Part shown: one piece after another, positions 21,701-42,348 of the stretch | Position numbering within the stretch: position 1 is the first letter of the stretch | How the letters are laid out: each line of letters begins with the position of its first letter | NCBI GenBank assembly: GCA_047495785.1 | Contig: JBLDXI010000007.1 | Coordinates: forward strand, 3,534,001 to 3,598,000 | Direction: 5' to 3' | DNA length: 64,000 bases | From: Lepidodermella squamata | Lineage: Eukaryota > Animalia > Gastrotricha | Notes under the pieces: generated by a model | Databases searched by the model: none | The model's input: the letters and a program-made list of their open reading frames with translations, nothing else | Told to the model about the DNA's origin: nothing | Program-made: the position numbers and the translations under genes

Positions 21701-22948
21701 CGATGAAGCTCCATTTAAGCATGATCCTGGAGGTGGAAAAGTCGGTACAGTGGTCGTTCCCGATGTGAGGCCAAAAAAGATAACCCTTCGCACCAGAACA
21801 TCTCCAATGCCCCCTAGTGATCCCATTATACTAAGCAAGGCAGTGGGCGATCCCATCACAGCCGTGCCCATCGACGGGACAGGTAGGTCAATGAAACAGC
21901 TGCAAGTTTCCATGGTTCCATTAGCGGATAGTGGCGAAACAGCGACACTAGCAAGGTCATTTGCGACTTGAATGAAAAGCCGAAACTTGCTCGAGCCTGA
22001 GCCGTCTAAGAAACGAGAGCTGCCACACGCAGGGATCGATGTGGCATTCGGAGGATTGCCCGGAATCGGTTGGTATGTCGAATTTCTCGTCTGGTATGTA
22101 GAATACGCTAACCCAGATGGTTGCACCTGAAAGGCTGTGAAAAGGCCTCTCGGCATTTTAAATAGGTCAATGTTCGTCGCTGCGGCCGATCTCTCTAGAA
22201 ATAGGGTGAATAGAAGAATGAATCACTGTATTTTCATGAAACACTTACTATAAGATCCGATATCTTCCGCGATGTTCACAGTGAACCAGGCCATCGAGTT
22301 GTTTGTCGGATACGTAATTTCCGCGTCGATTTCAAGTCGAAAGTTGGCAGGTGAACATATTGTGAGCCCCTTTGAACATCTCGGATTTAGGCATGTTTAC
22401 ATCAGTTACAAGGTCAAGGGTGACGAATAAAAAGCGGCTTTTTATAACGTGAATGGCAGAAACAAACTACTTTTTACCTGTCACCTTTCATCTCGAATTG
22501 ATGTACACAAGCCTAAAATCCGACTTATTAAAACGACATGTAACCCTGATGAAGAAAGGGACCTAGCTACTTAATCAACAGCCGAAAACGTACCCCCGGA
22601 GAGTTGATGTGACCGTGAACAATTTGGGGCGATATTTGCGCCAGTTGGTACCCTGAGCCTGGGATTTCAACCACCGCACTGCTCGTGGAGAAGCCGCCGG
22701 AGGTGAATTGGTTCGATCCATTGTAGTAATCAAAAGAATTGTCGCTATCGAAACACGCGGCACCCTGAAAGCCGTACGGTAGCGGGTAAGAAGCTTCGTC
22801 TGGGGTCGGGTCACCAGCAAGTACTGCGGAAGAAATAGTAATACAACATAGTTGGACAAAACTGAAACATTTATACGCCAAACCTAAAGATACCCAGATT
22901 CTTCTTACCTATTTTGCAGATAAAAAATATATTCAGCAACCGTAACAT
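18763..22948 (-). CDS. Family member E: signal + D1 + mucin stalk (~200 aa) + D2 + Cys-loop channel
   Basis: MLRLLNIFFICKI, intron, VLAGDPTPDEASYPLPYGFQG. Stalk ~20775-21378. D2 starts QPDFNLLALPYMHSGIPAY. Cys-loop CILKLRKFPFDTQRC; M2 PDRPAFSGTLLLSMIV. Confidence 0.9.
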
Positions 22949-23829
22949 GTTGGAGATACGAAATTCGAAGCTTTTCGAATCGAAAATTAAAACGTCAACC
23001 ATTTGCTGGTCTGAAAAGCTAGATGGCATGCGATGTCACGGTCCGCTAGTCCGATTTGTCGTATTGACGAGAAAATAATGTTTTATTAACGAATTACGAT
23101 GTTAAGCTCGCGCATAAGTGGTAAAAACACATTAGTTTCCTTGGATAAATTATATTTAGAATTTAGAGCCTTTCCAGGGCATCCCCTACTTTCTTGTTTT
23201 TGCGTTATACTTCCTGGTCCCGCCCTAGCACTTGTTCCACGATCAGTGCATTTTTTCAAAGGACAAAAACATGCGGAAACGTGGAACTTGGATGTTTAGG
23301 TTCTACAGTTAATAATGAGTGCTCTGAGGTAAAAAATGATGCAGAATTCAACTAATCTATTGTCAAACGAATATAATTGACGGCTGGGTTGTTAATTGAC
23401 CAAGTGACCCAGCCGCCCATTTAAATTTCAAACGGGTCACTGAATTGAATAAGATTACGATATTATTTGTTTTAACTGGAAGCGCAACGTAACAATAAAA
23501 GTGTAATTTTATTCCAGATTTATGAAAACTCGCTGTTAGGTTCCTCAGCTCGAAATTGTGAGGGCCTCGTCACTCTTGGTTTGAAAAAAGCTAGGTGCCC
23601 TGCTTCTTGCAGAATTTCATCTAAATTTACTCATTTGCTTTATCGCTCGCGCAACTCATTTACCCGTGACTACGGTTTGCTACAAAAAAGGTCCTAACAA
23701 AGTGTCACTTGGTACGTATTCTGCTGGTTCATTTATTACTTACCCGGATTGTTCTTTCGCGTTACTGCTTACTCTGAATTTCTGCTGAATTTCTGCTTCT
23801 AAACTCGCCCACTTATTTAAAAAAAAACA

Positions 23830-24105
23830 ATAAATTCAGCAGCCGTCACTCGTTAGAGATACGAAATTGGAAGCTTTCTGAAATGAAAAACAAAGCGTGG
23901 ATACTGGTCTCAAAAGCCAGATGGCATGCACTGCCATTGCCCGATCATCTGTTTCTTCCCACCGAATTTTTCGATCGAGAGGGAAGTAATGTTTTATTAA
24001 CGAACCACCATGTTAAGTGGTAAACAGACCATTAGTTTCCTTGGATAGATTATATTTAGAATTTCGAGCATTTCCAGGCCTTGCCCTACTTTCCTGTTTT
24101 GCAGC
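23830..24105 (-). pseudogene. Diverged duplicate of member E first exon and upstream region
   Basis: Colinear similarity to 22925-23205 (e.g. ATTAGTTTCCTTGGATA.ATTATATTTAGAATTT in both); ATG TTA is replaced by GAG TGA. Confidence 0.65.
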
Positions 24106-24850
24106 TTTGCTATTTTATTGAACAATAACAACACGGCTGGGCTGTGTCAAAGTTTCCTAAATCGTCCACCGTGAATGGCGGTGAATGGTTAATGTTTTAG
24201 AAATCTTCGCAATTCTCGTCGCAATCGCAATTATTCGTCATTGAAAGCATTCTCACTTCCTTTCACAATTTCTCATCCAGAAAGTATAATTTGGAAGTTT
24301 TAAATCGATCAACCGTTCAGATCAACGCAACTCTTGCGCATCGCCGTTTTACATAATAAGCTGCTGATTGATAAGTTAGCTGTCTCGTAAAGTGACGAAC
24401 ACGCGGAAGTGGTTGGCCCTTTTCGTACACACTCTTGACAGGAGAGACTTCCTCATCAACTGTGTTGCTAACCAAGATACAAATAACTAATAGCTGCGCA
24501 TCTGAAAGGTGAAAGGTTGAATCCTCTCGCCAAGTCATTGTTCTTTCAATTTGAGAAGTCATCTGAGTTTCCATGTGCGCAGTGAACGTGGCTAAAGATT
24601 CTCTTCGATCAAGATGTCTGAGTTGATTCAGACTGGACGTCACGATCTGCCGACTGAGAACATGAAGAAGAGCTTGAAGAGCATAGGAAAACATAAAACA
24701 TTTACTCAATTTCAAGCAATTTCCAAGTGGTAATTTTGACAAACAAACAACAAATAAACGTCATCATTGTAGGGATACCCGGAAATAATTGTTCGCGGAA
24801 TCAGCGTGTTTTTTAAGGATCGATTTGGTGTTTGAAAAAGCAGTTTTGGA

Positions 24851-25429
24851 CAGTGCTTTGGATTTGATTTGATTTGATTTAAACCTTAAATCACGAATCA
24901 CTTCAACTCAATCAAAATCAATCATTTGCTGGAATTTTTCAAGTTAAATCAATCAAAATCAATCACAAGGGAATGTAAATCAGGATTAAATCATCCTTAT
25001 TTATTCATCGAATCCTCATCTCACCATAACAGAGTGTTTCAATCAGAGTATCACATGCGATCAAATTGCACTTGCGATGAATAAGAATTATAAAGCCTAG
25101 CTGCTAATGCAACAAAACGAGTGCTGCCTCGTGCAAGAGCCTATCATTGCCCGTAATAAACACCACGCCGCCTCACATTGCCACATTTTTGGTCTGTGGT
25201 TTGAGTTTGGCACGCGATTTTTTGTTACTTCCTCCTTTTGAGCACACATGCATGTACACGCAAGAAGTAAAGTAGGCTCAACTAAATCGCTATAAATCAA
25301 GCACCTTAAATCAAAATCAATCTAAATCATCGCATTACGATGTTAAATCAATCAAATCAAATCACGGGTAGCCAAAACGCCTATAAATCAAATCAAATCA
25401 AATCAAATCAAATCAAATCCAAAGCACTG
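24851..25429. mobile_element. hAT-family MITE (579 bp)
   Basis: TIR CAGTGCTTTGGATTTGATTTG / CAAATCAAATCCAAAGCACTG, 8-bp TSD GTTTTGGA on both sides, and (AAATC)n subterminal repeats. Confidence 0.92.
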
Positions 25430-25625
25430 GTTTTGGAGTTTAATTTTGGGGGTTGAAAATCGTTTTTTTGCGATTGCGGCCAAATGTTGCCCTTCTTGGT
25501 GTTTAAAAATTTCTCATTTGGTCTTTAAAATTTAAACTGTTAAACTGCTTAAAAAACACTGGCCGAATCAGCATAAAATTTTCTTAATTTTGCTATGAAT
25601 CGCGGCAACAACACAATAAAGGAAA

Positions 25626-25628
<3 letters not shown>

Positions 25629-25664
<36 letters not shown>

Positions 25665-25665
25665 G
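25629..25665. repeat. (GA)n microsatellite 3' of channel F' (copy at 37193-37229)
   Basis: Direct reading of the sequence. Confidence 0.95.
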
Positions 25666-25775
25666 CTCATAGGGCATGTTAATATAATGATGATAGACGA
25701 TGATAATTACAACATTGTTACTACACGCACGTGTTCCGCTAATTTCTTAAATTTGATTCTTGATCAAAACCTGTT

Positions 25776-27633
25776 TCAAAATGCGACAATAAGAGCATAG
25801 ACATTCAGGGTTATGAGTACATCAAAACAGATTAGGAAAGCTGAGACATCCATGGCTCGAGCATAACTGACAGCTGCGAATTTGATCGAAATCGCCTTTT
25901 CAGCCATTAGAATCTTCTCGTATCTAGTAGTAGCAGCTACCATAATCGCTTCGTAAAACACGAGTGCGCCGGTCAGGCCACATAAAATTAAAATATACTC
26001 AGCCATCAGGACAGATTCAGATGTTTCTGGGATGCTTTTCAAAACATCAGATTGCGTAACGATCAGGCTCAGCAGCAGAGTACCGGTAAACGCTGGCCGA
26101 TCTGGAACATCAGGCTGGAATAGCAAGGACCCGAAAACGAGGAGCGTTATGATGGCACACGGGGCCATGTTGTTGATCAAATAAGGAGCCGGCTCTCGAG
26201 AGAATCCTACTGTGAAGCTTGCATAACCAGAAGTACTATTCTTCCTCAGCAGGGATGAGGTTATACCGTATGTCGAAGAAGCCGCGTCAAGCTTCCACAA
26301 CTCACTCTCAAACGATCTGTCAAAGGTCAACCGGGTTCCGCCGAAAGTTAAGAACTTCTCATATTCGTCCAGTAAGAACGTGAAATCACACCGCTGCGAG
26401 TCGAATGGAAATTTTCGGAGTTTCAGGATGCATTTCGCTGTTATAACGCCGAATCTCATCCAATGAAAAAACAGAGTTCTATTCGGACTCGTAGGGTAGT
26501 AAGCTATCTGGACTTGTTCTTTCCATGTACTACTCTCTAGGTACAGATCCACAGTTGTATTAGCGAATCTAATACCAGGTACCCAAACTTCATCTCTATT
26601 GACCGTGTAAACCCGGTCAGCTTCATTCACGTCAGGAGCGGTAACCTCCACTGGGCAATTACGCACCGCCCATTGGACAAGGATTACGGCACCGGCTGAG
26701 ATCTCTTGAGCCTGCGCGTTAATATCTACCAAGGTTTCAAACTCCAGGGTCATGAAAATTTTGGTCCCGAAGTCTGGAGATTTGTTCTTCGTACCCAGTG
26801 ACTTACAGGTAGTCAAGTCACTCAGGGTTAGCAAAGGAAACATGCTGCCATCGATCAAATTTGGAATCTTGAATTCAGTCGTATTTGTTTCGAAGTCATA
26901 CGTCCTCGGCGTTGATGGAGTTGGCTGCAGTGCCCAAACTCGCGTGTTTTTCACAGTGACGTCAGCATTGTACCCATTAACGCCGTAAATTTGAATCGTC
27001 GCCAGTCCACTAGCTAGTTGATTTGCAGCCAAACCAGGTACATTGGCATTTGAAAGTAGGACAGCTGCTGTTGTTTCGTTGAATCCAGGCAGAGGCGTGA
27101 CAGCAGCCTAATACGTGAAAATCGTTAGCGATCTAAATTGGCATGAACCTGGAAAAAGCACTTACAGTGACTTTGTCGTTGGCAACCTGAACTAAGAGTC
27201 GGAAATCAGACACGACAACACCACTTGAGTTAGTATCCCTTCGAGCTCTGTAATGGAAAAGATTCGAAATGACGTTCGACTTTCTGCTATAGGCGAAAGG
27301 CGGAGCTCGGGCGGTCGACGCGATTTTAGCGTCGTATGCTACGAACAATCTTCCGCCTATGCCAACTTGAAGTGATAAATGAAGACCGTTGTAGTTGTTG
27401 AATAAGCTCTTCCTCCCATATGCGTCAAAATCTGATAGACGAATCTTACGAAAAATCATATAAATTCACCAAAACATACCGACAAGAGTTTGTGAGTTTG
27501 AAATTTCGAAAATTATGTAACTGAAAGAGTTAGGATCAAATTGGGTGCTGAAGTCGGTTTCAAAGCGAAAAGCAGCAGGGCTTTGCCCCTTCGGTAGCGA
27601 ATTCTCAATTTCCACCGCGCCAAAATCGTTCGT
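25776..27633 (-). pseudogene. Member F': 5'-truncated duplicate of F (partial D2 + intact channel frame)
   Basis: Identical to 37340-39197. It breaks inside the D2 exon (..TNDFGAVEIEN) where the EnSpm end begins, so it has no signal peptide, D1 or stalk. Confidence 0.85.
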
Positions 27634-28044
27634 AAAAACTGTAAAAACGAGGTTTCTATTTAGTATCCTAAGTAGTAACCATCACTACTCTTGGCGATTG
27701 TTACTTTAAAGGAATTTCATTGTTACTTTTGAGACCCCGGTTCCTTAAAAGCACCATCCTATCGAGTAATAATTACTAATTAATGCTAAGAAGTACCGTA
27801 CTATTTAAATGCCATTCGGTTTGAATTGTTGCTTTTTAGGTTGAATGGCCTGGTTCCGCTGCATCGGACGTTTACACTTCCAGAAAATAGCACACCATGT
27901 TCATAAACATCAAATTTTATTTCATTATGATCGACGTGCAACAGCTTCTTTCGCTATAGTAAAAAGCGGTATAAATATTTCAACTGATTGCAATATTTCA
28001 ACGGATAACTGAAATATTTCAAAAATATAACGACATCCAGGCGC

Positions 28045-31000
28045 TCAATGTGGCAAGCAATCAATGTTTAGATAGAAATGGTTGTTTAGGTGACTAATTA
28101 TGGGAAAAGATCTTTTCACTGACAAATCTTTCAAAGCTATAATCGCTATCTTCGAAGGTTGTGTGATCGAAACTAAGTAAGAAAAATATCGCCGACAAAA
28201 TCTTTCCAGAGAAATTTCAATAATTACAAAATAGATTTCAGAATTTACAAGAAATATTTGTTCGATTTGATGGAAGACAGGCTTGCTCGCATTTTCAAAC
28301 CAGCCCACAGTTGGCTTCGAGGTAGTTACAGCGGCGCCACGACAATAAAAAGCGCCTTTATAACGAATGGAGTTATATACAATCGCTACATCAGGAATGG
28401 TCAGATCATCCAGTTTGTAATTTTTCGACAGATATTGAAGAAAATCTTTCATATTTTTTTCTTTTCCTCCTTCCATGCAATCAAGCCGATCAAGTACGTT
28501 AATGAAGCGCACGGATTGAAATTTCGCCATGTTAAATATTTGAGAGATTGGGTTGTGATAATTTTTTGGTTCGAGTTTGGATAAGCCGCGCTCAAAGCCC
28601 AAAGAAGAATAAAACCGAGCAGGCCCGTAATCGCGAATTTGTTGAGGATAATGTACAAGGTTATGCAGTTTAGTGACAACAAAAGTTTCACCATAGGCTC
28701 GCACAGATAATTGCAAGAAGTGAAAAATTAAATTTTCCAAAATTTTTACATCATCGACAAATACATAGGGAGAATATATAAAAGCAATTATTCTATTCAA
28801 CAGTGCCAAGCAGCGGTATTCGATACAATCAAAAAATGTTGGTTTCAGTCGAAGAGGAGTAAAATCTAATATAAAACCTAATCGAGTCATCAGCATTTTC
28901 ATTTGGGTGGCGGTTTGGTGGCTGTGAAGCTCGCCTGACACGATCTTGAAATTCGGTGCCGGAACAGCCTCGTGTTTCGCGGTGTCGTCGAACGGGAACT
29001 TGTCGATCGCCTCGTTCATGGCGTCGTCCGTCAGGCCGAACTTGGTTTTTGCCGCTGTTAGGGCTCCGTTCATAATGTAGACACAGCCCCCCTCAAGGAG
29101 GTCATGCGCTGGCTCATTGACAATACAAGCAGGGAAAATAGGTCGCAAGTGCTGTATCTCAACGAACGCTGAAACGACGCCGCTAACTCCAGACTCCGAC
29201 ATTCTAATAGGAAGAATGAGAATTAATTAAGGAATTTGTCAATTGAATTGCGAAATATTTGGCAACATCCATTCCTTTGGGAATAATTTTTAATCTGGAA
29301 AATTCTAGCACCGCCAATAAAAAATCACCTGAGAAAATAATTCGCAAAAATTCCGCAGCATTATTTCAAAAAAATGCTGGAAAATTTGTCAGGGGATGTT
29401 GGTAGATTTACGAAAACAAGTTTCAAGCGAATTTTAATCATTTTTCTTAAATTGTTGACAACTTACTTAGACCTTCGTTCAGTGATAGTTACAGCTTTCA
29501 TCACTTCTTCAGCTTGAGATACGAGACTGTCGGCGGTGCGCATTTTCAAGTCTTTCGCTTCGTATACTTTGCCGAACTCGCCCCTTGTTAGCTCGCATTT
29601 GCTGCATGGTAGATTCGCTGAGAAGCTTTCAAGCATCCCAATCAGCTGGTGCTGAGCCAGATTGTCGCCAAGACCGCTGATCATCAAGATTTGAACTTTC
29701 TTGCTGTTGATGACGATAGGCTCGTCAATTTCGTTCTGAACAGCTCGAACCACTGAATTCAAAGCTAGAAAAAATTGCTTCAATTTCATATCGCTCTTTA
29801 TATCGAAATAAAATTAATTTATTTCAAATTTCTTCAATTTCAAAAACATTTTTTAGATTTTTCAAAAATCTGAAATTTTCAAATTAAAATTTCTTGAATA
29901 TTCATTTTTTAATTTTACCAATTTAAATTTCAATTATTTGAATGATTTTTAAATTTTAATTTTAATTTTAATTTTAATTTTAATTTTAATTTTAATTTTA
30001 ATTTTAATTTTAATTTTAATTTTAATTTTAATTTCGAATTCCTACATTTTTTTAATTTTCTTTGAATTTCAAATTTATTGTTGAAATCTTAAATTTTAAT
30101 TTCGAATTATGAGAAGAGAAAAAGTTTGTGTTACGTACCGACTGTTTTCCTCGTATCCTTAGCCAACTTACAGCACTTAGAAGCTGCTAGTAGAAAGTGG
30201 AATTCGGGTCTAGAAATTCAAAAGTTATATAAACTCCAAAAAATTGATAGCAGCATTACATCCGATCGAACTGGCGCGGCACCATTTTCCATTCGAAAAC
30301 GGCCAGCTTCTGCTTTCGCACGAATGTTCCAAGTGCTGCGACGGAGACGAATTCATCAAAGAATAAAAATATTGGCACGATGTAGTCATGTGGTACATTC
30401 GCGATCATTTGACGAATAGCTTGACCGTCAAGGGGCGATGACATGTAGCCCTGTTCCGTTGGCTGCAGAAGGCTTGTCTTGCTGAAAACTTCAAGCAGCT
30501 CGGGCCTCGAAGACAGGAAGTGGCCAACTTGTTTTGTGATCGGTAGATACTGAAAAGATTGAACACCGACGGGCTCACAGGGAGCTAATGCCGAGAGAAG
30601 CTTGCCTCGATTGTGGGTTGAGAGCATATTTTTGAAAATTTCGTTAAAAAACAACGTCGAGAAACCGCCCAGAAAATGTTGAAGCAATTTTTGAACAATA
30701 CTGCTGATGTAGTCGATGACAAAACAGACGAGAGTTTCGGAGGCAGTGAAGTCGTATTTCAGTTTAAAAACGAAATCGAGAAGCGAATTATTCAGAATTT
30801 TTGCCAATTGCTCCTCCAGCGATAATTTCAAATTCGATTTCTCGTCTTCCGGGCGGCAGTCAGTGGCTGGACTGCTTTCGAATAATGGAGATTCGCCCAG
30901 TTTCTTATCAGCCGCCGTACCATTTGTGACCGGCGTGGACGTAGTACTTCTAACGAACTTTGGGACGCATTGATGCTTCCGTAATAGATAATCGGTCGAA

Positions 31001-31065
31001 AAGGGACAGGCGCATTTTGAGCAAGTAAAAGACTTTTCTTGTTTATAAGGCTGATATGAAGCCAT
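28045..31065 (-). CDS. EnSpm/CACTA-type transposase (multi-exon)
   Basis: N-terminal CxxC..H zinc finger, then FLFFDEFVSVAALG..KQKL, LGDNLAQHQLIGMLESFSANLPCSKC, PAHDLLEG and KLHNLVHYPQQIRDYGP..SSLGFER. These motifs are in the order typical of animal EnSpm-like transposases. Confidence 0.85.
29952..30034. repeat. (ATTTTA)n microsatellite in transposase intron
   Basis: About 13 tandem hexamers. Confidence 0.95.
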
Positions 31066-31158
31066 TCTAGGAAGAACGAGAAATTAACGAATTCATATTG
31101 TTTTATTTTAATTTTCCGCGGCGAGATTTTTCATAACGTTTGAACATACAGTTGTATA

Positions 31159-31338
31159 CAGGGTGGCCAAAAAATTCTGCAGAGCGGGAATTCGATGCGC
31201 ATCATTTTAATGAGGAGTTTCAAGAAATTGAGGAGTTCCATTGGCAAAAGAATGCTTGAAATTCTTCAACTTCTTGAAACTTCTCATTAAATTGATACGC
31301 ATCGAATTCCCGCTGAGCCCAATTTTTTGGCCACCCTG
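31159..31338. mobile_element. Palindromic Tc1/mariner-like MITE (180 bp) nested in the EnSpm element
   Basis: TA-CAGGGTGGCCAAAAAATT ... AATTTTTTGGCCACCCTG-TA; the arms are complementary over ~70 bp. Confidence 0.88.
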
Positions 31339-31533
31339 TAGTATATAGTAGTAGTAGTATAGACTAGATAACTGGCAACGGGAAATTCCGATTTGTAAAT
31401 TGAAGCAAAGTTATGAAGCAAAGAAAGAGCTATACAGTACATAGGACAAGAGACAAATTCACAACAAACTGGGAAACCATAGATGCCAGCAAAATAAATT
31501 GAACTAGCACTATAAACGTTGATCGAAGAACAA

Positions 31534-33762
31534 CTAATTGTTAACATTAGCACGCCTCGATGATCTCAGAATTTGAGTCTCGGCCATTGTTCGCGGCTTC
31601 TTCGAGTTAATGGGTGTATTGTTGCTAGACCGTTTCGCCTTATTTGATGTTGGCACTGGCGTTGCGTTAGGCGGTTGCGTTGGGCGACCGCTTGTAGGCG
31701 TATTGCTTGTAGTTGGGCTTGAAGCTGATCCAGCACTACGACCGCGAATATTTGCGATGGCCATGGTTATCTGAAACAGGAAAAATGAATAATTATTCTA
31801 AAAAATCCAGCCTACCATAAATTCGATTTAAACTTTACATTTTCAAAATCTTATTTCAATTTTGAGAAATTTCCAAAAAAATTTCTAAATGAATTTAAAT
31901 TAATAAAATTTAATTTCGAAATTGTTCCAAAAAAAATTGTTTCAAAATTCAAAATCCAAATTTTTTTTCAGAAATCGAAAATTGCACTTAAAAATTTCAA
32001 AAAATAAGTTCAAAATTAAACTTAAAAAATTTTGAAATTACGATTTGGAAGAGTCTGAATTTAAAATTTAAAATATTAAACATACCGACTGGTCTACGTC
32101 AGTCAGGCTTTCATCATCATCATCATCGGCGACCTCCAAATTTTCTCCATCTGAGTCATTTCCATCGTCAGCTTGTTCAGCCTGTTGTTGTAGGTTTTGT
32201 TCTTGCTGTTGTTGTTGCTGCTGTGGTTGTTCGGCAGCTTTCATCGCGTTAGCGTTGCGCTTGATCGCGGCTGCCGCTACTGCTTTGCGATTCGATACGC
32301 CTTTTCTCACTTTGGCCCTGAAAATTCCCTGAATAAACACAATTTATTGCACTGTACAAGAACATTTTCATGAAATCAATTACCTGCTGAGCAGCCATAG
32401 GTAAAAGCAGGCCGTCAACCCTCGACGTTTCGTTGTCATGCGTCTCTCGCCAAGCCCGTTCAACGATTGCAAGGGCAATGGCGTAGTCGCCCTTAGCGAA
32501 AATACGGCCCTCATTTTGTTGAAGTATCTTGGTCGTCACGAACCGACACAAAATATCGAAGCTGGTAATTATCGTCCCACCGACCCACTCGTTGTAAAGA
32601 TGAGCATTAAATTGCTTAATATCATTCAGGGTAAATGCCAAATTCACTTGATCGCGCTAGAAAACCAAAAGCAATTAGGAATTAAAAATCAAGTTATAAT
32701 GCACATTAAAATTAAAAACAAGAACGACCTTAAATACAAGAAAAATTACTCACCTTCACAATATTATTGGATTCTTCCACAGCCTTGGGAGGCGCTGCTT
32801 TCCTCGCTGCTGCGAAAGCTGCGACCGTTTCGCAAGCTTTGCGATGGCCCATGACTGGGAAAAGCTCCTTGATGTCTTCATTTGTTAGCAGCGAAATACC
32901 GAGTTCATCCAGTTGGTTAGCTGAAAAATCACAGTTGAAATTAAAAAAAAACAAAAAGTTGAAACTAAATTTTAATGAGACCAAATTTTTCCACCGCTGA
33001 ATTTGAGGCTCCAGCACTAAATCTAGTGCAATCTCAAATTCAGTGATGGAACCCTTAATTTTGGGTGCGCACTTGGCTCACCCAAAATTAATTTATAAAT
33101 AATGGATTATTTTTTCTAGCGAGCGGATAAAGACAAAAATGACAATTCTGACGGAAAGGCTATCAGTCGATCGCTAATTGCGGGAGCGAAAATTTGTGAA
33201 GAACCCCTGCGCTATTTAGCTACAATTATTCAATGTGTCCCATAAGTAGCGCCCTAGAATAAGAGAAGAGGTCGCATCTCACGGCCAGGAAATTTTTAGA
33301 AAATTCAAAAAAGGGTAAAATTCCCGAACCAGTTACCATCGGGGTTTTCCGGGTTTAAATTAATTCAAATTAATTCAAATTTCCAGGAAAAAATTATGAA
33401 AATAAATTAGGGCGTGAAAAAAAGCGATGATGTGATAAATTCTACGACACGCGCTAAACTGTTACTAAAACATAAAAAAGCAGGCCAAGACATGAGTTTT
33501 GAAGCCCTCGATGCGTGAACAAATTCTAAAATATTTCACTAATTATAGAAAAATAAAACATGCGACTAAGTGGGTAGACCCAACGCCAGATGACATGGCA
33601 TAGCATATGGTAAATACAGGCGGCTGTTTTTAGGCCATAGCATCAGCCCGAAGGTAGCAATGCGAATAACTTACCAACAAAAGCCTCGCATAGTCGAGTT
33701 TGATGATCAGGATTAGCAACACCCGCGTCGGCAACCAGCTTCAAGAGCGCTTCTTGATCCAT
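31534..33762 (-). CDS. Transposon accessory protein with N-terminal SAM-like domain and Gln/acidic low-complexity tail
   Basis: MDQEALLKLVADAGVANPDHQTRLCEAFV, intron, ANQLDELGISLLTNEDIKELFPVMGHRK (SAM-like pattern), further exons with poly-Q and poly-D. Exon joins are approximate. Confidence 0.6.
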
Positions 33763-35488
33763 GGCGATTTAGGCGAGAAGTAACAATAAAATGAAATTTA
33801 ATTCTACATGATAAATGATAGAATGATGGCGAACTGAATTGACGGGAATTAAAAAAAAAAATTCCGCAATTTTCGCGGGGCAGAGGTCGTCAATCGGCAA
33901 ATATGGGAGTAACTATTGCCAAAGCTGCACTTGAACAAAACAAAATTATGGAGGCATTTCTAACATCACCCAGTCATCCGCGACAGTGTGAGCCTAAAAG
34001 GAAGGACGCAAAGCACACCTAGTATGTTTCGAGAAAAACAATTGAAAAACCTAGCTGTTGGCCAGTCAAATTGTAGGAAACCTTGGGACGATCATTTGAA
34101 ATAAAATAGTTCTAACATCAAGGCGCGAATTTGAAATAATGACGCAGGTGCCTTGGAATGGCGTGTTTGCGTGACTTCGTCCTGTCACACGCCGGGCGAG
34201 ATAGGTGTGAGAGCGTATCGTTGACGCGCGCGTCAGAGCGCGGCGCGGTGTTAAGATCGCCATCGTCGTTGTTGACATTTCGGCTTTACAAGTGGCATCT
34301 CTAAGTAGGCCGATCGGCAGCGGTGTAATAATAGGAGCGGTCGTGTTTAGGTTCACTAGATAGGCAGCGGTGTAATAATAAAAGTGGTCGTGTTCATAAT
34401 TTATACTTAAACAAAAGCTGCGGCGAAAACCATAGAGAAACGGTAAAAATTACGGCGTGATAAAAACGATTATGTTGTGAATAACGGTGATTATGATTAG
34501 TATTATCGCCAACGAAATAGTGGCAATAAAAAGCTAATAGAGCGGCAATATCATGGGCAAGACAAATAAATTCGCCGCGACTGAACGCGCGAGCAATAAA
34601 TTTGCCGCGAGAGCATGCTGCGACAGCGCAATTTTCTCGCATTATTTATAAAAGGTGAAATTTATCGTATATTCAAGTTATTAATTTCTTAAAATTTGTT
34701 GCATAAAACGATAGCATAAAAGCCTAATTCTTTATCGTCCCAAATTTTATAAAATGCAGAGAAAAATGCAGAGGCCTCGTTCAAAAAACTGACGCAGTTG
34801 CCAGCGGTTAACAGTCCAACAAACGACAAATAACGGACATTGATCGGCGCGGCCGCTAATGTAAATGACGCTTTACCGCCTGAAATGAAACAGTGAAATT
34901 AAACATTTTGGAATTTTGAAAATTCAAAAAAAACGAAATAATTCGCGCTAAAAATTGGAGGGCAGCCGCATCAGTACACAGCCGGTTGGTAATAAACGCT
35001 GAAAACATTTATCGCTAAAACAATAATTCCTATGAAAATTTATAAAAAAACACGCGTCGGCGGGTGAAAAATTAAGAAAAATCCGTGAAATAAGGCTACT
35101 GCAGGTAGCGGCAATAAAAGTATAAAAATATCCTGAAAATTCGATACGACGAAACACCAATTTGTCGCATGGAAATACTGGCATAATAACTGATTTAGAC
35201 AAGTTGAAATTGAAATGAAAACATCAACACTGCGCGGGCGAACAGCTGACAATGACCACGACGACGAAAACGACGACGATTTGTGCGCGACTAGTGCGCG
35301 CGCTCGCTTGCGCTCTGAATGGCACGCTCTATTCAGCAGACAATGGCCATTACCTCATCATTAGCCGCGCGCGTTAGCTAATAATTACCGTGCTGAATAA
35401 AGCGCGTGAACGATCAGCACCTTTGTGGCTATTCAGGAGACGACGGACTTTAAAAGCAAGAATAAAAAGGAACCACGTTTTTACAGTG

Positions 35489-37189
35489 CATGCACTGCCA
35501 TTGCCCGATCATCTGTTTCTTCCCACCGAATTTTTCGATCGAGAGGGAAGTAATGTTTTATTAACGAACCACCATGTTAAGTGGTAAACAGACCATTAGT
35601 TTCCTTGGATAGATTATATTTAGAATTTCGAGCATTTCCAGGCCTTGCCCTACTTTCCTGTTTTGCAGCTTTGCTATTTTATTGAACAATAACAACACGG
35701 CTGGGCTGTGTCAAAGTTTCCTAAATCGTCCACCGTGAATGGCGGTGAATGGTTAATGTTTTAGAAATCTTCGCAATTCTCGTCGCAATCGCAATTATTC
35801 GTCATTGAAAGCATTCTCACTTCCTTTCACAATTTCTCATCCAGAAAGTATAATTTGGAAGTTTTAAATCGATCAACCGTTCAGATCAACGCAACTCTTG
35901 CGCATCGCCGTTTTACATAATAAGCTGCTGATTGATAAGTTAGCTGTCTCGTAAAGTGACGAACACGCGGAAGTGGTTGGCCCTTTTCGTACACACTCTT
36001 GACAGGAGAGACTTCCTCATCAACTGTGTTGCTAACCAAGATACAAATAACTAATAGCTGCGCATCTGAAAGGTGAAAGGTTGAATCCTCTCGCCAAGTC
36101 ATTGTTCTTTCAATTTGAGAAGTCATCTGAGTTTCCATGTGCGCAGTGAACGTGGCTAAAGATTCTCTTCGATCAAGATGTCTGAGTTGATTCAGACTGG
36201 ACGTCACGATCTGCCGACTGAGAACATGAAGAAGAGCTTGAAGAGCATAGGAAAACATAAAACATTTACTCAATTTCAAGCAATTTCCAAGTGGTAATTT
36301 TGACAAACAAACAACAAATAAACGTCATCATTGTAGGGATACCCGGAAATAATTGTTCGCGGAATCAGCGTGTTTTTTAAGGATCGATTTGGTGTTTGAA
36401 AAAGCAGTTTTGGACAGTGCTTTGGATTTGATTTGATTTGATTTAAACCTTAAATCACGAATCACTTCAACTCAATCAAAATCAATCATTTGCTGGAATT
36501 TTTCAAGTTAAATCAATCAAAATCAATCACAAGGGAATGTAAATCAGGATTAAATCATCCTTATTTATTCATCGAATCCTCATCTCACCATAACAGAGTG
36601 TTTCAATCAGAGTATCACATGCGATCAAATTGCACTTGCGATGAATAAGAATTATAAAGCCTAGCTGCTAATGCAACAAAACGAGTGCTGCCTCGTGCAA
36701 GAGCCTATCATTGCCCGTAATAAACACCACGCCGCCTCACATTGCCACATTTTTGGTCTGTGGTTTGAGTTTGGCACGCGATTTTTTGTTACTTCCTCCT
36801 TTTGAGCACACATGCATGTACACGCAAGAAGTAAAGTAGGCTCAACTAAATCGCTATAAATCAAGCACCTTAAATCAAAATCAATCTAAATCATCGCATT
36901 ACGATGTTAAATCAATCAAATCAAATCACGGGTAGCCAAAACGCCTATAAATCAAATCAAATCAAATCAAATCAAATCAAATCCAAAGCACTGGTTTTGG
37001 AGTTTAATTTTGGGGGTTGAAAATCGTTTTTTTGCGATTGCGGCCAAATGTTGCCCTTCTTGGTGTTTAAAAATTTCTCATTTGGTCTTTAAAATTTAAA
37101 CTGTTAAACTGCTTAAAAAACACTGGCCGAATCAGCATAAAATTTTCTTAATTTTGCTATGAATCGCGGCAACAACACAATAAAGGAAA

Positions 37190-37228
<39 letters not shown>

Positions 37229-39197
37229 GCTCATAGGGCATGTTAATATAATGATGATAGACGATGATAATTACAACATTGTTACTACACGCACGTGTTC
37301 CGCTAATTTCTTAAATTTGATTCTTGATCAAAACCTGTTTCAAAATGCGACAATAAGAGCATAGACATTCAGGGTTATGAGTACATCAAAACAGATTAGG
37401 AAAGCTGAGACATCCATGGCTCGAGCATAACTGACAGCTGCGAATTTGATCGAAATCGCCTTTTCAGCCATTAGAATCTTCTCGTATCTAGTAGTAGCAG
37501 CTACCATAATCGCTTCGTAAAACACGAGTGCGCCGGTCAGGCCACATAAAATTAAAATATACTCAGCCATCAGGACAGATTCAGATGTTTCTGGGATGCT
37601 TTTCAAAACATCAGATTGCGTAACGATCAGGCTCAGCAGCAGAGTACCGGTAAACGCTGGCCGATCTGGAACATCAGGCTGGAATAGCAAGGACCCGAAA
37701 ACGAGGAGCGTTATGATGGCACACGGGGCCATGTTGTTGATCAAATAAGGAGCCGGCTCTCGAGAGAATCCTACTGTGAAGCTTGCATAACCAGAAGTAC
37801 TATTCTTCCTCAGCAGGGATGAGGTTATACCGTATGTCGAAGAAGCCGCGTCAAGCTTCCACAACTCACTCTCAAACGATCTGTCAAAGGTCAACCGGGT
37901 TCCGCCGAAAGTTAAGAACTTCTCATATTCGTCCAGTAAGAACGTGAAATCACACCGCTGCGAGTCGAATGGAAATTTTCGGAGTTTCAGGATGCATTTC
38001 GCTGTTATAACGCCGAATCTCATCCAATGAAAAAACAGAGTTCTATTCGGACTCGTAGGGTAGTAAGCTATCTGGACTTGTTCTTTCCATGTACTACTCT
38101 CTAGGTACAGATCCACAGTTGTATTAGCGAATCTAATACCAGGTACCCAAACTTCATCTCTATTGACCGTGTAAACCCGGTCAGCTTCATTCACGTCAGG
38201 AGCGGTAACCTCCACTGGGCAATTACGCACCGCCCATTGGACAAGGATTACGGCACCGGCTGAGATCTCTTGAGCCTGCGCGTTAATATCTACCAAGGTT
38301 TCAAACTCCAGGGTCATGAAAATTTTGGTCCCGAAGTCTGGAGATTTGTTCTTCGTACCCAGTGACTTACAGGTAGTCAAGTCACTCAGGGTTAGCAAAG
38401 GAAACATGCTGCCATCGATCAAATTTGGAATCTTGAATTCAGTCGTATTTGTTTCGAAGTCATACGTCCTCGGCGTTGATGGAGTTGGCTGCAGTGCCCA
38501 AACTCGCGTGTTTTTCACAGTGACGTCAGCATTGTACCCATTAACGCCGTAAATTTGAATCGTCGCCAGTCCACTAGCTAGTTGATTTGCAGCCAAACCA
38601 GGTACATTGGCATTTGAAAGTAGGACAGCTGCTGTTGTTTCGTTGAATCCAGGCAGAGGCGTGACAGCAGCCTAATACGTGAAAATCGTTAGCGATCTAA
38701 ATTGGCATGAACCTGGAAAAAGCACTTACAGTGACTTTGTCGTTGGCAACCTGAACTAAGAGTCGGAAATCAGACACGACAACACCACTTGAGTTAGTAT
38801 CCCTTCGAGCTCTGTAATGGAAAAGATTCGAAATGACGTTCGACTTTCTGCTATAGGCGAAAGGCGGAGCTCGGGCGGTCGACGCGATTTTAGCGTCGTA
38901 TGCTACGAACAATCTTCCGCCTATGCCAACTTGAAGTGATAAATGAAGACCGTTGTAGTTGTTGAATAAGCTCTTCCTCCCATATGCGTCAAAATCTGAT
39001 AGACGAATCTTACGAAAAATCATATAAATTCACCAAAACATACCGACAAGAGTTTGTGAGTTTGAAATTTCGAAAATTATGTAACTGAAAGAGTTAGGAT
39101 CAAATTGGGTGCTGAAGTCGGTTTCAAAGCGAAAAGCAGCAGGGCTTTGCCCCTTCGGTAGCGAATTCTCAATTTCCACCGCGCCAAAATCGTTCGT
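35489..39197. repeat. 3709-bp direct segmental duplication, copy 2
   Basis: Starts on the base after the EnSpm TIR (..TTACAGTG|CATGCACTGCC) and matches 23925-27633. Confidence 0.97.
36415..36993. mobile_element. hAT-family MITE, duplicate copy
   Basis: Same TIRs and GTTTTGGA TSD as 24851-25429. Confidence 0.92.
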
Positions 39198-41097
39198 TTG
39201 GAAAGAATTCAGCTGAATGCCTGCTGGCGTGACTTCGGCCCCAGGTTGCGTAGATATAACCCCAGATGCTTTGATATTTGAGTTGACAGCGTCGAATGAG
39301 TTAGAAGCGAGATAGACAGGATAACCCGACCAAAGCTTCGGCAGGCTCAGCGAAGCTATGTCGGGCTCTGGGATCAACAGATCATGCGTGGTCGATGAGA
39401 TTGAATCCAAGGTAGAATGGCTGGTTGCCGATAATGTAGATTCGATCGTTGACGAAGTAATGCTAGTTGCTGCTAGGCGAGTAGTTGTGGTCGTCGCTGT
39501 CGAAGATGAACTCATTGCTGGAGTTGATGTTGAATTCATTGCAGTCGTCGGTGTTGTGATGCTAGATGGATTGGTTGCAAGCGTCGTAGCTGTTTGCGTT
39601 GAAGAAATCGTAGTTGAAGAAGCATCTAGGCTTGATGTCGTAATAGGGACAGAACTTTTAGTAGGGGCTACAGTTGTAGCTGAAGACGTGCTAGTTATGG
39701 CTGTTGAAACTGTTGTGGAGGTTAGGCCCACAGTTGGACCCGAGGTTGCTGTAGTTGTCGATGACGAAGTTATCGCTGGTGTGGTGCTTGAAGTCGAACT
39801 CGAAGTTGCAGTCGAAGTTGTTGTAGTAGTAGGGGTAGTCGTCGAGGCTTCCGTCGAGGTTGTACTTGAGCTGGTTGTCGAGCTCTCAGTCGTTGTCGGG
39901 GTGCTTGTTGTAGTTGGTGTTGTCGTTGTTGTCGATGTCGTAGGTGTTGTGGTAGTTGTAGTATCAGCTGTCGTAGTTGAAGTACTGGTACTGGTGCTAG
40001 TCGTAGTCGTCGAGCTGGAAAGCAATCAAATAAGCAAAGCCCTCCTCAATTCTCAATCAGACCTTGAAGTCGTAGCTGCATAATTGACGCAGGTACCAGC
40101 TGGTGGGAAGGCTGTTGCACTAGAATTGCCAGGAGTCAGGCCAAAGAAGTAGGTTCGTGTCGCCAGAATGTTGCTAACGTTGCCCAAACTCGCGAACAAA
40201 GATGCCGTGCTGTATTGCGCCGCCATCACGTTAGTCGCCATGTTCGGAACAGGTATGTTGTCAAAACAAGTACAGGTCTCTGTCGTACCAGCTGCAGGTA
40301 GCATGGCTACCGCTAAACTAGCCATGTCGTTGACGACTTGAACGAAAAGACGAAAGTTGCTGATCCCAGAGCTATTGAGAAACGCAGCATTGCCGCAAGA
40401 TGCAACCGACGTGTAGTTCCACGGATTCCCAGGAAACGGCTGATTTGTTGTTGGAGCTGTTGTGTAGTAAGTTGCGTACACTAATCCACCGGGTTTCATG
40501 CGAAAGAAGAATTGCAGGCCTCTGAAGTTCCGGCAGTGAGAATATTCGGTCGTTACGCCACCAGTTGCTGCAAATTAAAAAATATAGCCGCTAAGTTGAG
40601 AACCAAACACTGGCAATGAAACTCTTACACCAATGAACGCCCTGGTCACTAATGGTAACAGCGAGCCAGGAAAATCCTGTTGCGATAGGATAAGTGGCTT
40701 CGATGTCGATCTCCATCCGAAAATTCGAGCTTGGGCATATGTAGCCCTGAGAAAATGAGTTAGAAGATTATGGGACTATAGCGGGTAACCAACATACCCA
40801 GCCAGAATAAATGAAGCCGTCTAGGATAAGGGGTGATATGCGAGCCAATTGGAATCCATTTGCCAGCTTCACAGCATCACTGGTGCCTGTATCGTAAGCG
40901 TTCGAACGGTAAGTTGTTGATGTATTCACAAGATCAAACGAGTTATTCTGGTCATAGCAAGGCGTCCCTTGGTAGCCCTGTGGCAGTGGATAGGAGGCTA
41001 CATCTGGTGTAGGTATTGTAGCTTCGAGTAGCCTCAGGAGGGCCGTTATCAGAAGACCCGATAGCAAGCAAGTAAAAACACGATCACAGTTTGCCAT
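37340..41097 (-). CDS. Family member F: signal + D1 + mucin stalk (~210 aa) + D2 + Cys-loop channel
   Basis: MANCDRVFTCLLSGLLITALLRLLEATIPTPDVASYPLPQGYQG. Stalk ~39380-40017. D2 starts PEPDIASLSLPKLWSGYPVY. Cys-loop CILKLRKFPFDSQRC; M2 PDRPAFTGTLLLSLIV. Confidence 0.9.
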
Positions 41098-42348
41098 GAA
41101 TTTTGTCCAGAAAAGTAAAACACGCAACCGCGGTGTTGGCTTCGCTTACAGCTTCCCGAAAGTAGTCTGGCGTGGGCTGGCTAATGGCTCAATATAGTCG
41201 CATCCAATATTCACAGTTGTCGCTTTTTCTCTTCTGTGTTACACTTTTCAAGTACCCCTGATGTTCCAAAAAGGACGCCGTCATGCGGCTACCAACGTTC
41301 CAGTCGAGGTCGATGTAGCTGTGGTAATTAAAAAGCACTTGTGAATCAAAACAGCGTTAGTTTTATTTACCTATAAGTAAAATTTGTTTAGTTTTGCTGT
41401 AGACAGTAACAGGTCATCACGATCTGACAATATCGCTCAATTTCAATATTTCTCAGTGTTTGTATTGCCAGGAATGTGATTGCTCGTCTTTCAATTTCCT
41501 CTGGGTTTTAACATGATCCAGGTGAGGACATCTTTGGGAATCAATGGAATTTTCATAAAAAATCAGCAGTATAAATGCCATCCGGCAGAGTGCGCGAAGT
41601 ACCTCGAACTATGGGGTATTTTCAGACCCACATTTTATGGACCAACGGGTCCCCCTGTGGTCTTTTTGGCATTTGCCACCTTAGCCTTCCGAACTGGGCC
41701 TTCCGAACGATACCCCTCATTCCCAACCGTACTTCGCGCCATCCGGAAAATTTGACGCACATCCTACGAGAGCTCTTCTTGTTATCATTCTGCGGACCTC
41801 AGTGGGGCCCTTGAAGCCTCATCGAGGTGGTTCAAAAACTTCAACCTATTGAAGTGGGAAACTGGATTATCATGAGCACATATGTCACGTATCTGGAGCA
41901 GCAACAAAAAGTGTCATTGACCTATTTGCTGACAATATCGCTTCGTTATTAGTTCATTGAAAATTGTCGTCTCACTTCGAAAATTTGAAAAATGAACTGA
42001 TAAATTGATAAGTGATCTAAAAAGGACAAAGATAATTGTCCTAACAAAAGTAGATCGCCTTAATTATCAGATAAAAACTAGGCGTTCAAGAAATCTCAGC
42101 GTCCTCTAACACGTGGGATTTTTTTGCTGGTCATTCTGAAAAAATCATCATGGTCATTATTTCATCATCATTAAATTCAAATTGTTTTCTGAATCTCTGC
42201 TGATATTTTAGTGTTTAATTTTGGATTATTCGTTGATGAAGATAATTCTGACATTATTTATCGTGATCGTACCGTCTTTTCGGTGTGTGCAAGTTCGTTC
42301 CCATGAAGCTGTATGTCCTTTTGTATAACGTCATTTACGTATTTTCAA

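Follow-up and report, generated by a model that had tools for sequence, protein, structure and literature searches.

A single transposon of probable CMC type between perfect 3.7-kb direct repeats in Lepidodermella squamata: a probable variant of transposon-end-mediated flanking duplication with one repaired joint

Duplications of flanking DNA that are mediated by transposon ends have been well shown in genetic screens, with P in Drosophila and with Ac in maize. To our knowledge, natural cases that are perfect to the base are rare, above all in other animals and for CMC elements. In P-element hybrid element insertion (HEI), the joints of the products are made by the transposase and are exact, and an 8-bp target-site duplication (TSD) is common to the reciprocal product. 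HEI was reportedly described by Gray, Tanaka & Sved in 1996 and by Preston, Sved & Engels in 1996.

Reversed-ends transposition of Ac yields the structure TE-segment-TE-segment, in which two elements are present and the 8-bp TSDs are diagnostic (PMC3744419). In maize it was also reported that the ends of aborted transposition-linked replication were sealed by NHEJ/MMEJ with 0-9 bp of microhomology, showing that mixed transposase-plus-repair products do occur (PMC4270019).

The locus described here lies in a window of 64,000 nucleotides (the whole stretch of DNA that was analysed) and has the order X-R1-TE-R2-Y, in which X is the flank before R1, R1 and R2 are the repeat copies, TE is the element and Y is the flank after R2. 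Its right joint is exact, its left joint is imprecise, its outer borders are native and its first gene copy is truncated. As in P HEI, one cut-and-paste element was kept where the two copies of directly duplicated adjoining DNA meet, the outer sequence is otherwise unchanged and the event took place in an animal germ line; unlike P HEI, one joint is imprecise and carries filler, the element appears to belong to the CMC superfamily and no donor footprint is seen. The locus resembles maize Ac/Ds alternative transposition (PMC3744419) in that the endpoints of the duplication are transposon termini and no border repeat is needed as a substrate for NAHR, but it differs from the reversed-ends products in that it lacks a TSD and has a single element and a single repaired joint. 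With the maize re-replication and composite insertions (PMC4270019) it shares one transposase border, one NHEJ/MMEJ border and flank copies on the kilobase scale, whereas those insertions hold two elements and their repaired joint is inside the insertion, between flanking sequences, and not, as here, at the element's own terminus. A second young channel-gene duplication was found 785 kb away (C7:4383538-4402863), with the structure TE-S-TE-S-TE, three identical Tc1-like copies and two gene copies. That duplication, which is of the NAHR type, is likewise perfect, young and transposon-associated and concerns a channel gene that is paralogous and lies in the same cluster on the chromosome; there, however, recombination probably used the repeats themselves as its substrate, whereas here host DNA forms the repeat and the element is single. 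The locus would be a variant of the known transposon-end-mediated flanking duplication, with a probable CMC element and one repaired joint.

In a self-comparison of the window at an offset of 11,564 bp, positions 23924-27633 equalled 35488-39197 with 0 mismatches, and it is clear from the alignment that the identity breaks off sharply at both ends. The right inverted repeat ends on the first shared base, a G at 23924/35488, so that the host repeat proper is one base shorter and comprises the two copies below, given together with the MITE inside them.

23925-27633, + strand: repeat copy 1 (R1), 3709 bp, 100% identical to R2
35489-39197, + strand: repeat copy 2 (R2), 3709 bp, 100% identical to R1
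24851-25430, also 36415-36993, strand not given: MITE inside the repeat, 580 bp, with 30-nt perfect inverted ends

The original prediction of identical 3.7-kb copies that end at 27633 and restart at 35489 was borne out, with 0 mismatches in 3709 bp even within the microsatellites. A genome DNA search found paralogues of R elsewhere at 76% identity or less, which makes the identity of R1 and R2 a strong outlier; the duplication looks very young, as had been proposed. The same kind of search placed further copies of the 580-bp MITE on C36, C11 and C16 at 98-99% identity. No alternative allele or haplotig of the locus was found when the assembly, which is collapsed, was searched.

Between the repeats lies the element, with the following features.

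27637-35488, - strand: CMC (Mirage-like) DNA transposon, 7852 bp, single-copy in the assembly
28045-31065, - strand: transposase gene, reading toward R1, whose exon ORFs match the profile of its relatives
31157-31340, strand not given: palindromic MITE of 184 bp, nested within the element and lying just upstream of where the transposase starts

The element appears to be an intact-looking transposon of the CMC (CACTA/Mirage/Chapaev) group. Its termini are of the CMC type (5'-CA…TG-3'), reading CACTG at the right and AACTG at the left, and both ends read CACTG in two copies of a sister family. The transposase exons were compared singly with a family profile of 804 positions built from relatives; the three large ORFs (~31065-30256, ~29789-29463 and 29202-28045) matched positions 32-302, 350-429 and 435-795 collinearly, with E-values in that order of 4e-24, 7e-17 and 6e-69, and a probable small exon lies at 30208-30137. 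In the alignment, FFDEF corresponds to the D of the family, GDNLAQH…CSKC to its D…C(2)C and HDLLEGG to its E. The C(2)C follows directly after the second D (GDNLAQH…LPCSKC), and the consensus CRxC is (near-)invariant in an alignment of 63 sequences; a clear H(3-4)H spacing was not found in the large exon ORFs. In the sister family the coding blocks are likewise conserved. An exhaustive HMMER search returned 359 relatives at E<=1e-3, the best at 1.3e-41. When the 63 long relatives were compared with Pfam, weak matches were obtained to DUF4218 (11/63), Transposase_21 (5/63) and Plavaka (3/63); the bit scores displayed lie under the curated cut-offs, and the rest are known as E-values alone, the best being 1.4e-5 to 1e-4. 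Pfam gave no match to the element's own ORFs at E<=0.01 and just DUF4218 (E 0.097) at E<=10, a PDB sequence search gave nothing meaningful, and a word-based protein search with the 385-aa ORF gave no match, probably owing to its length window.

No second copy of the 7852-bp element was found by a whole-genome DNA search of the 121-Mb assembly, and a whole-genome search for its terminal pattern revealed nothing above background beyond its own two ends. A single copy is what one would expect if the element had arrived by cut and paste and left its donor site empty. Matches on C74 were considered as a donor copy and rejected, being transposase-exon fragments of 300-500 bp with ~85% identity within a segmental repeat. 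The nested 184-bp MITE occurs at least 40 times in the genome, its copies being 89-95% identical.

TSDs of CMC elements are 2-5 bp long, with 2 bp in Mirage-like and 3 bp in plant En/Spm elements. It had been proposed to read the TSD length from other genomic copies of the element; the element itself has no second copy, and the sister family supplied two, which carry CACTG…CAGTG ends and 2-bp TSDs (TG/TG and AA/AA). By this 2-bp length the element is of the Mirage-like and not of the plant En/Spm-like kind, so that its earlier designation as an EnSpm transposon holds for the CMC (CACTA/EnSpm-group) assignment but not for the plant type, whose TSD would be 3 bp.

The inner joints were then read from the ends of the element.

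27634-27636, strand not given: filler at the left joint, AAA; if 27637 is counted in, the joint can be taken as AAAA in place of the terminal C
27637-27654, + strand: left terminal inverted repeat, first base A for C (AACTG)
35471-35488, - strand: right terminal inverted repeat, with an intact CACTG end fused exactly to the first R2 base

R1 is followed by the AAA and then by AACTGTAAAAACGAGGTT, and the right terminal inverted repeat reads CACTGTAAAAACGTGGTT when reverse-complemented; the two match at 16 of their 18 positions, and both are placed exactly at the repeat borders. The change of the terminal C to A is confined to the left end, and the right end retains its C. Since the left end is collinear, with no indels, with the CACTG left end of the sister family, the first base of the element is 27637. 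The end alignment in this way upheld the predicted AAA filler, the A in place of the first C and the right end at 35488. The AAA is missing from the native R/Y border (…TTCGT/TTGG…, the slash here and below marking the joint). Because the terminal C reads A and the AAA is absent from that border, the left joint reads as a product of end-joining, not as one made by the transposase. A filler of three to four A's is too short to tell which repair pathway acted. A templated filler was also considered, as GTAAAAAC at the junction repeats positions 5-12 of the inverted repeat, and was set aside as compatible at most, four A's being too uninformative. The element is flanked by two different dinucleotides, AA and CA, and a short TSD is therefore missing at R1-TE-R2, in agreement with the prediction; judged by the 2-bp habit of the sister family, the missing TSD seems to belong to the anomaly.

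The two outer borders of the duplication were compared with paralogues within the window.

23915-23934, strand not given: native X/R border (…AGATGG/CATGC…), no footprint
39188-39207, - strand: native R/Y border, between the codons Q and T (…GIQLNSFQ/TNDFGAVEIEN…) in the D2 exon

An older paralogous segment at 22880-23230 runs straight across the X/R point (AGATGGCATGC). At the R/Y point, which 7 paralogues cross ungapped and in frame, the Y side of the D2 exon comprises exactly 828 bases, that is 276 codons. No excision footprint was found in this comparison at either border. The X/R-end and R-start/Y borders have no common sequence beyond one base, and tandem duplication by NAHR was rejected, there being no pre-existing repeats of greater length at the borders of the duplication. 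Neither an X/left-end junction (X/CACTG…) nor a right-end/Y junction (…CAGTG/TTGGAAAG) occurs anywhere in the assembly.

The repeat covers the 3' half of the coding region of a channel gene together with 1.85 kb of its 3' flank.

25776-27633, - strand: fragment of a lectin-headed Cys-loop channel gene, 5'-truncated, within R1
37340-41127, - strand: channel gene B, intact, from ORFs and paralogue matches

Gene B consists of a signal peptide and D1 (~41127-40053), a mucin-like stalk with the start of D2 (40025-39030), the remaining D2 (39023-38697) and the channel (38596-37340); its signal peptide, D1 and stalk lie solely past R2, at 39198-41127. The fragment in R1 holds the last 56 codons of the stalk/D2 exon, the remaining D2, the ligand-binding domain (Pfam Neur_chan_LBD on the ORF 25776-27032, E 2e-9) and the membrane domain. 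It was found to have neither a start codon nor a signal peptide, and reading from the element into R1 gives stops and then …VFTVF/TNDFGAVEIEN without an ATG. From its sequence, the R1 copy would be a fragment and not a functional duplicate of the channel gene, with the gene at R2 staying whole. The original prediction that a channel gene had been copied is thus right for the 3' half and the flank but not for a complete gene. Since the R1 copy is 5'-truncated by a breakpoint in an exon and has neither start codon nor signal peptide, the duplication added no receptor to the family, and the suggested direct mechanism of receptor-family expansion is not supported by it; the locus alone is no demonstration of such expansion.

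Because the inner repeat borders match the termini of the element to the base, random chimeras or slippage are unlikely at these points, and a rearrangement mediated by transposon ends is by far the best supported class of explanation. Within it, we lean toward an aberrant, half-completed transposition of the single-copy CMC/Mirage-like cut-and-paste transposon, an explanation that we hold to be somewhat probable. The order of events, the template and the repair would then be as follows. The transposase would have joined the right end exactly to the intergenic sequence …GATGG/CATGC…, 1.85 kb downstream of gene B, with the left end staying unintegrated. The free X-side chromosomal end would have gained a copy of the next 3.7 kb, either because it was joined to a sister chromatid or homologue broken at R/Y, or because its 3' end primed DNA synthesis templated by the intact complementary strand, by the sister or by the homologue. 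End-joining would then have connected this copied end to the element's free left end, with loss of the terminal C and gain of a few A's. The product, X-R-(AAA)-TE-R-Y, would retain the original gene intact at R2+Y and carry a promoterless, 5'-truncated duplicate at R1, downstream of the transposase gene. For the copy length of exactly 3.7 kb and the stop between two codons, chance alone is offered as explanation.

A classical alternative transposition from a resident copy, of the Ac sister-chromatid or P hybrid-element type, is the less probable rival. The left end of one sister and the right end of the other would both be integrated by the transposase 3.7 kb away, yielding the flanking direct duplication with the element at its joint and a reciprocal deletion. 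A lone element exactly between direct repeats without a common TSD is the expected product, the reaction is documented for Ac and P (PMC3744419) and the transposase looks intact. A joint made by the transposase should be exact, however, and at the left joint the terminal base is altered and filler is present, which speaks against the earlier proposal of an Ac-like event in which both ends joined sites 3.7 kb apart; that joint points to end-joining repair, not strand transfer. The sister-chromatid form, also proposed, and the hybrid-element form would each need a footprint or a perfectly restored site at X/R or R/Y, yet both borders are native, and a resident copy at R/Y would have interrupted an exon. 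The reversed-ends form predicts two elements, as in the TE-segment-TE-segment product of Ac (PMC3744419), whereas the single-element R-TE-R here accounts for the only two occurrences of the terminal pattern in the genome.

An assembly artefact appears unlikely. An assembler could have crossed inside the identical element between homologues of the forms X-TE-R-Y and X-R-TE-Y, and the perfect identity of R1 and R2 down to the microsatellites, the collapsed assembly without haplotigs and the further perfect duplication at C7:4383538-4402863 would suit such a haplotype switch. It would nevertheless require a single-copy element to have inserted on two separate occasions, at sites 3.7 kb apart and once in an exon, and the abnormal left joint as well, and the assembly lacks any of the X/left-end and right-end/Y junctions; random amplification or read chimeras, for their part, would not place both breaks within 1 nt of the termini. 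Very improbable indeed is a scheme in which replication slippage or end-joining first made a plain tandem duplicate of R and the element later inserted by chance at R/R, since the insertion must strike the one joint among 3.7 kb, the 2-bp TSD usual in the sister family would have to be missing (AA against CA) and the damaged left terminus remains.

The half-completed transposition might also reflect a habit of the host, doubtful as we judge this to be, in which the free 3' end at a half-finished insertion is extended by hundreds to thousands of bases before sealing. If so, kilobase-long 'target-site duplications' would accompany DNA transposons as well as LINEs and Penelope-like elements, and one shared mechanism of repair synthesis, represented at this locus by a DNA transposon, would be a routine source of partial gene duplicates. 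With all four of its borders preserved, the locus can show how a failed transposition is resolved, through one enzymatic and one repair joint, and it provides a concrete case of a gene cluster gaining 5'-truncated fragments downstream of a transposon gene.

Self-comparison of the window revealed that positions 23924-27633 recur 11,564 bp further on as 35488-39197, with sharp loss of identity at either side. The first common base, G, is also the final base of the right inverted repeat of the intervening transposon, so the host repeat starts at 23925 and 35489. The original prediction of identical 3.7-kb direct copies with borders at 27633 and 35489 was borne out, with 0 mismatches over 3709 bp that contain two microsatellites and one 580-bp MITE.

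Features of the duplicated locus (window coordinates) and copies of the sister family (contig coordinates)
23925-27633: R1, first copy of the repeat R, 3709 bp, identical to R2
24851-25430 and 36415-36993: 580-bp MITE with perfect 30-nt inverted ends CAGTGCTTTGGATTTGATTT…, inside the repeat
25776-27032 (= 37340-38596), minus strand: ORF for Cys-loop ligand-binding domain and membrane part
27634-27636: AAA filler between R1 and the element
27637-35488: element, 7852 bp, between filler and R2
29226-28048, minus strand: ORF matching profile positions 435-795, E 6e-69 (partly by construction)
29813-29466, minus strand: ORF matching profile positions 350-429, E 7e-17
31083-30259, minus strand: ORF matching profile positions 32-302, E 4e-24
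31157-31340: palindromic MITE, 184 bp, two 84-nt arms 87% complementary, nested in the element
35489-39197: R2, second copy, 3709 bp, identical to R1
C29:3,614,489-3,621,301: sister copy, 6.8 kb, CACTG…CAGTG ends
C11:892,057-898,893: sister copy, 6.8 kb, CACTG…CAGTG ends

The assembly searched comprises 121 Mb in 151 contigs, the window being C7:3,534,001-3,598,000. Remaining genomic paralogues of the repeat reached at most 76% identity, and neither R nor the sequence that follows it was represented by an alternative haplotig in the assembly. Copies of the 580-bp MITE on contigs C36, C11 and C16 were 98-99% identical, indicating that this family was mobile recently.

The element reads AACTGTAAAAACGAGGTT at its left end and CACTGTAAAAACGTGGTT at its right end (reverse-complemented). 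It is single-copy by whole-genome DNA search, where the only other matches were the nested MITE, exon fragments on contig C74 and the sister family on C29 and C11; its terminal pattern was found nowhere else in the genome above the reversed-pattern control. In DNA the sister copies share 97.9% identity between themselves and 67-71% with the element, and their transposase matches that of the element at 73% protein identity over the last exon. As the left end is collinear base for base with the sister ends, 27637 is the position of the terminal C and reads A, in agreement with the predicted left end (A for the first C, after AAA) and right end at 35488. The absence of an ordinary short target duplication was likewise confirmed, the flanks being AA and CA as against 2 bp in the sister copies (TG/TG and AA/AA). 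The change at the left terminus has probably left the element immobilised. The nested 184-bp MITE, with at least 40 genome-wide copies of 89-95% identity, sits directly upstream of the transposase start. The C74 fragments (L008:4971-5373 and L009:4642-5079) are 300-500 bp long, correspond to the first exon of the transposase at ~85% identity and are embedded in a segmental repeat of ~89% identity; they may represent pieces of the element's own family that were captured or have decayed.

No significant Pfam match was obtained with the element ORFs, and a word-based protein search likewise retrieved nothing for the 385-aa ORF (28045-29202, minus strand). An exhaustive HMMER search with the same ORF recovered 359 relatives (best E 1e-41), the best being proteins of 760-850 residues. 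Weak matches to DUF4218 (11), Transposase_21 (5) and Plavaka (3) were seen among 63 long relatives, those with displayed bit scores falling under the Pfam curated cut-offs; these families lie on the CACTA/EnSpm side. A profile built from the relatives matched three minus-strand ORFs in collinear order, the exon ORFs being searched one by one. The element carries the family's D (FFDEF), D then C(2)C (GDNLAQH…CSKC) and E (HDLLEGG), and no clear H(3-4)H motif was seen in the separately read exon ORFs. The CMC/CMCT group has been described with a C(2)C motif, CA..TG termini and target duplications of 2-5 bp (PMC12730594), which the CA…TG termini and 2-bp duplication of the sister family match. The name EnSpm thus appears correct at superfamily level, with the element closer to the Mirage type than to plant En/Spm. 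Further minus-strand ORFs in the other half of the element, at 31534-33017 and 34066-35202, gave no Pfam match; one block (32435-32671), with 44% protein identity to its counterpart in the sister family, suggests an accessory gene.

An older local duplication (22880-23230 versus 23783-24130, ~75-90% identity, ~905 bp apart) covers the border between R1 and the preceding host DNA, X, and served as an internal 'empty site' control. Its diverged copy at 22880-23230 reads …AGATGGCATGC… uninterrupted across the homologous point, so X/R1 is native and without footprint. The border of R2 with the following host DNA, Y, falls between codons Q and T of …GIQLNSFQ/TNDFGAVEIEN… in the minus-strand exon 39030-40025; seven window paralogues align gap-free over it, and by this alignment R2/Y is native as well. 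The right end of the element joins R2 exactly. The joint of R1 with the left end is inexact: the terminal C is lost or altered, and the 3-4 A's have no counterpart at the native R/Y site. With both outer borders native and both inner borders novel, an intact X-R-Y must have gained 11,564 bp (filler, element and R).

The evidence points to a transposon-end-mediated event. Because the inner borders match the element termini to the base, random chimeras, slippage and NAHR were ruled out; chimeras arising in amplification or in reads would not have breakpoints within 1 base of both termini. An assembly artefact from a heterozygous insertion cannot alone create both inner borders. The one remaining artefact, in which the assembly crossed within the element from an X-TE-R-Y to an X-R-TE-Y haplotype, is improbable: a single-copy element would have had to insert twice at sites 3.7 kb apart, once into an exon, and the odd left joint would still need explaining. 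Alternative transposition, as originally proposed, fits only in outline: a transposon-end origin stands, but the textbook pathways fit the structure less well. The sister-chromatid or hybrid-element pathway requires a resident copy at X/R or R/Y and predicts two exact joints together with, at one outer border, either a footprint or a perfectly restored site; at this locus one of the joints is inexact, and the outer borders are both native. The Ac reversed-ends pathway yields two elements, as TE-segment-TE-segment (PMC3744419), whereas only one is present.

A half-completed transposition would explain the structure most economically. The right end would have integrated at …GATGG/CATGC…, leaving the left end free. 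The X-side end would then have acquired a copy of R. This could have come from joining to a sister or homologue with a break at R/Y, or from synthesis on an intact template primed by the 3′ end of X. End-joining of the extended end to the left end would have lost one base and added A's. In maize, products that combine transposase action with NHEJ/MMEJ are on record (PMC4270019). The junction GTAAAAAC repeats inverted-repeat positions 5-12, which is compatible with templated filling, but the match is too short to carry weight.

A second duplicated locus, of a paralogous channel gene, lies 785 kb farther along the contig (C7:4,383,538-4,402,863), where a perfect 19.3-kb array alternates three identical 2986-bp Tc1-like elements (inverted ends TACAGTGCTCCCTCG…, TACAGTG…; TA flanks) with two 5184-bp segments that are identical and each carry a Cys-loop channel domain of 36% identity to that of the window. 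The array has the pattern that unequal exchange between the element copies at its flanks would leave, or may be a loop in the assembly, and differs in architecture from the window locus, where one element lies between host repeats. A long-tract repair-synthesis habit common to several element types in the L. squamata genome has a low probability.

The repeat encodes, on the minus strand, a Cys-loop ligand-binding domain (Pfam Neur_chan_LBD, E 2e-9) with the membrane part, and further holds the end of the second lectin-like domain, D2, plus 3′ flank over 1.85 kb. Only past R2, at 39198-41127, do the signal peptide, first lectin-like domain and mucin-like stalk occur, so R2 plus Y forms the intact gene. 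The claim that a channel gene was copied therefore holds for the ligand-binding and membrane part and not for these N-terminal portions; R1 has about the C-terminal 580 of ~1,100 codons. On reading from the element into R1, no ATG precedes …TNDFG and stop codons are met instead. The transposase gene (28045-31065, minus strand) lies head-to-tail with the channel fragment (25776-27633, minus strand), ~410 bp apart over the left end, and is directed at R1, so read-through transcripts, or trans-spliced transposase/channel chimeric RNAs, are conceivable. A channel product without signal peptide would not be a receptor. Expansion of the receptor family by the present event is unsupported, R1 being a truncated fragment lacking signal peptide and ATG. 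As assembled, the locus is a very young, transposon-end-mediated segmental duplication. Its general kind is known, the mixed signature of its joints is unusual, and it yielded a truncated gene fragment and no new receptor.
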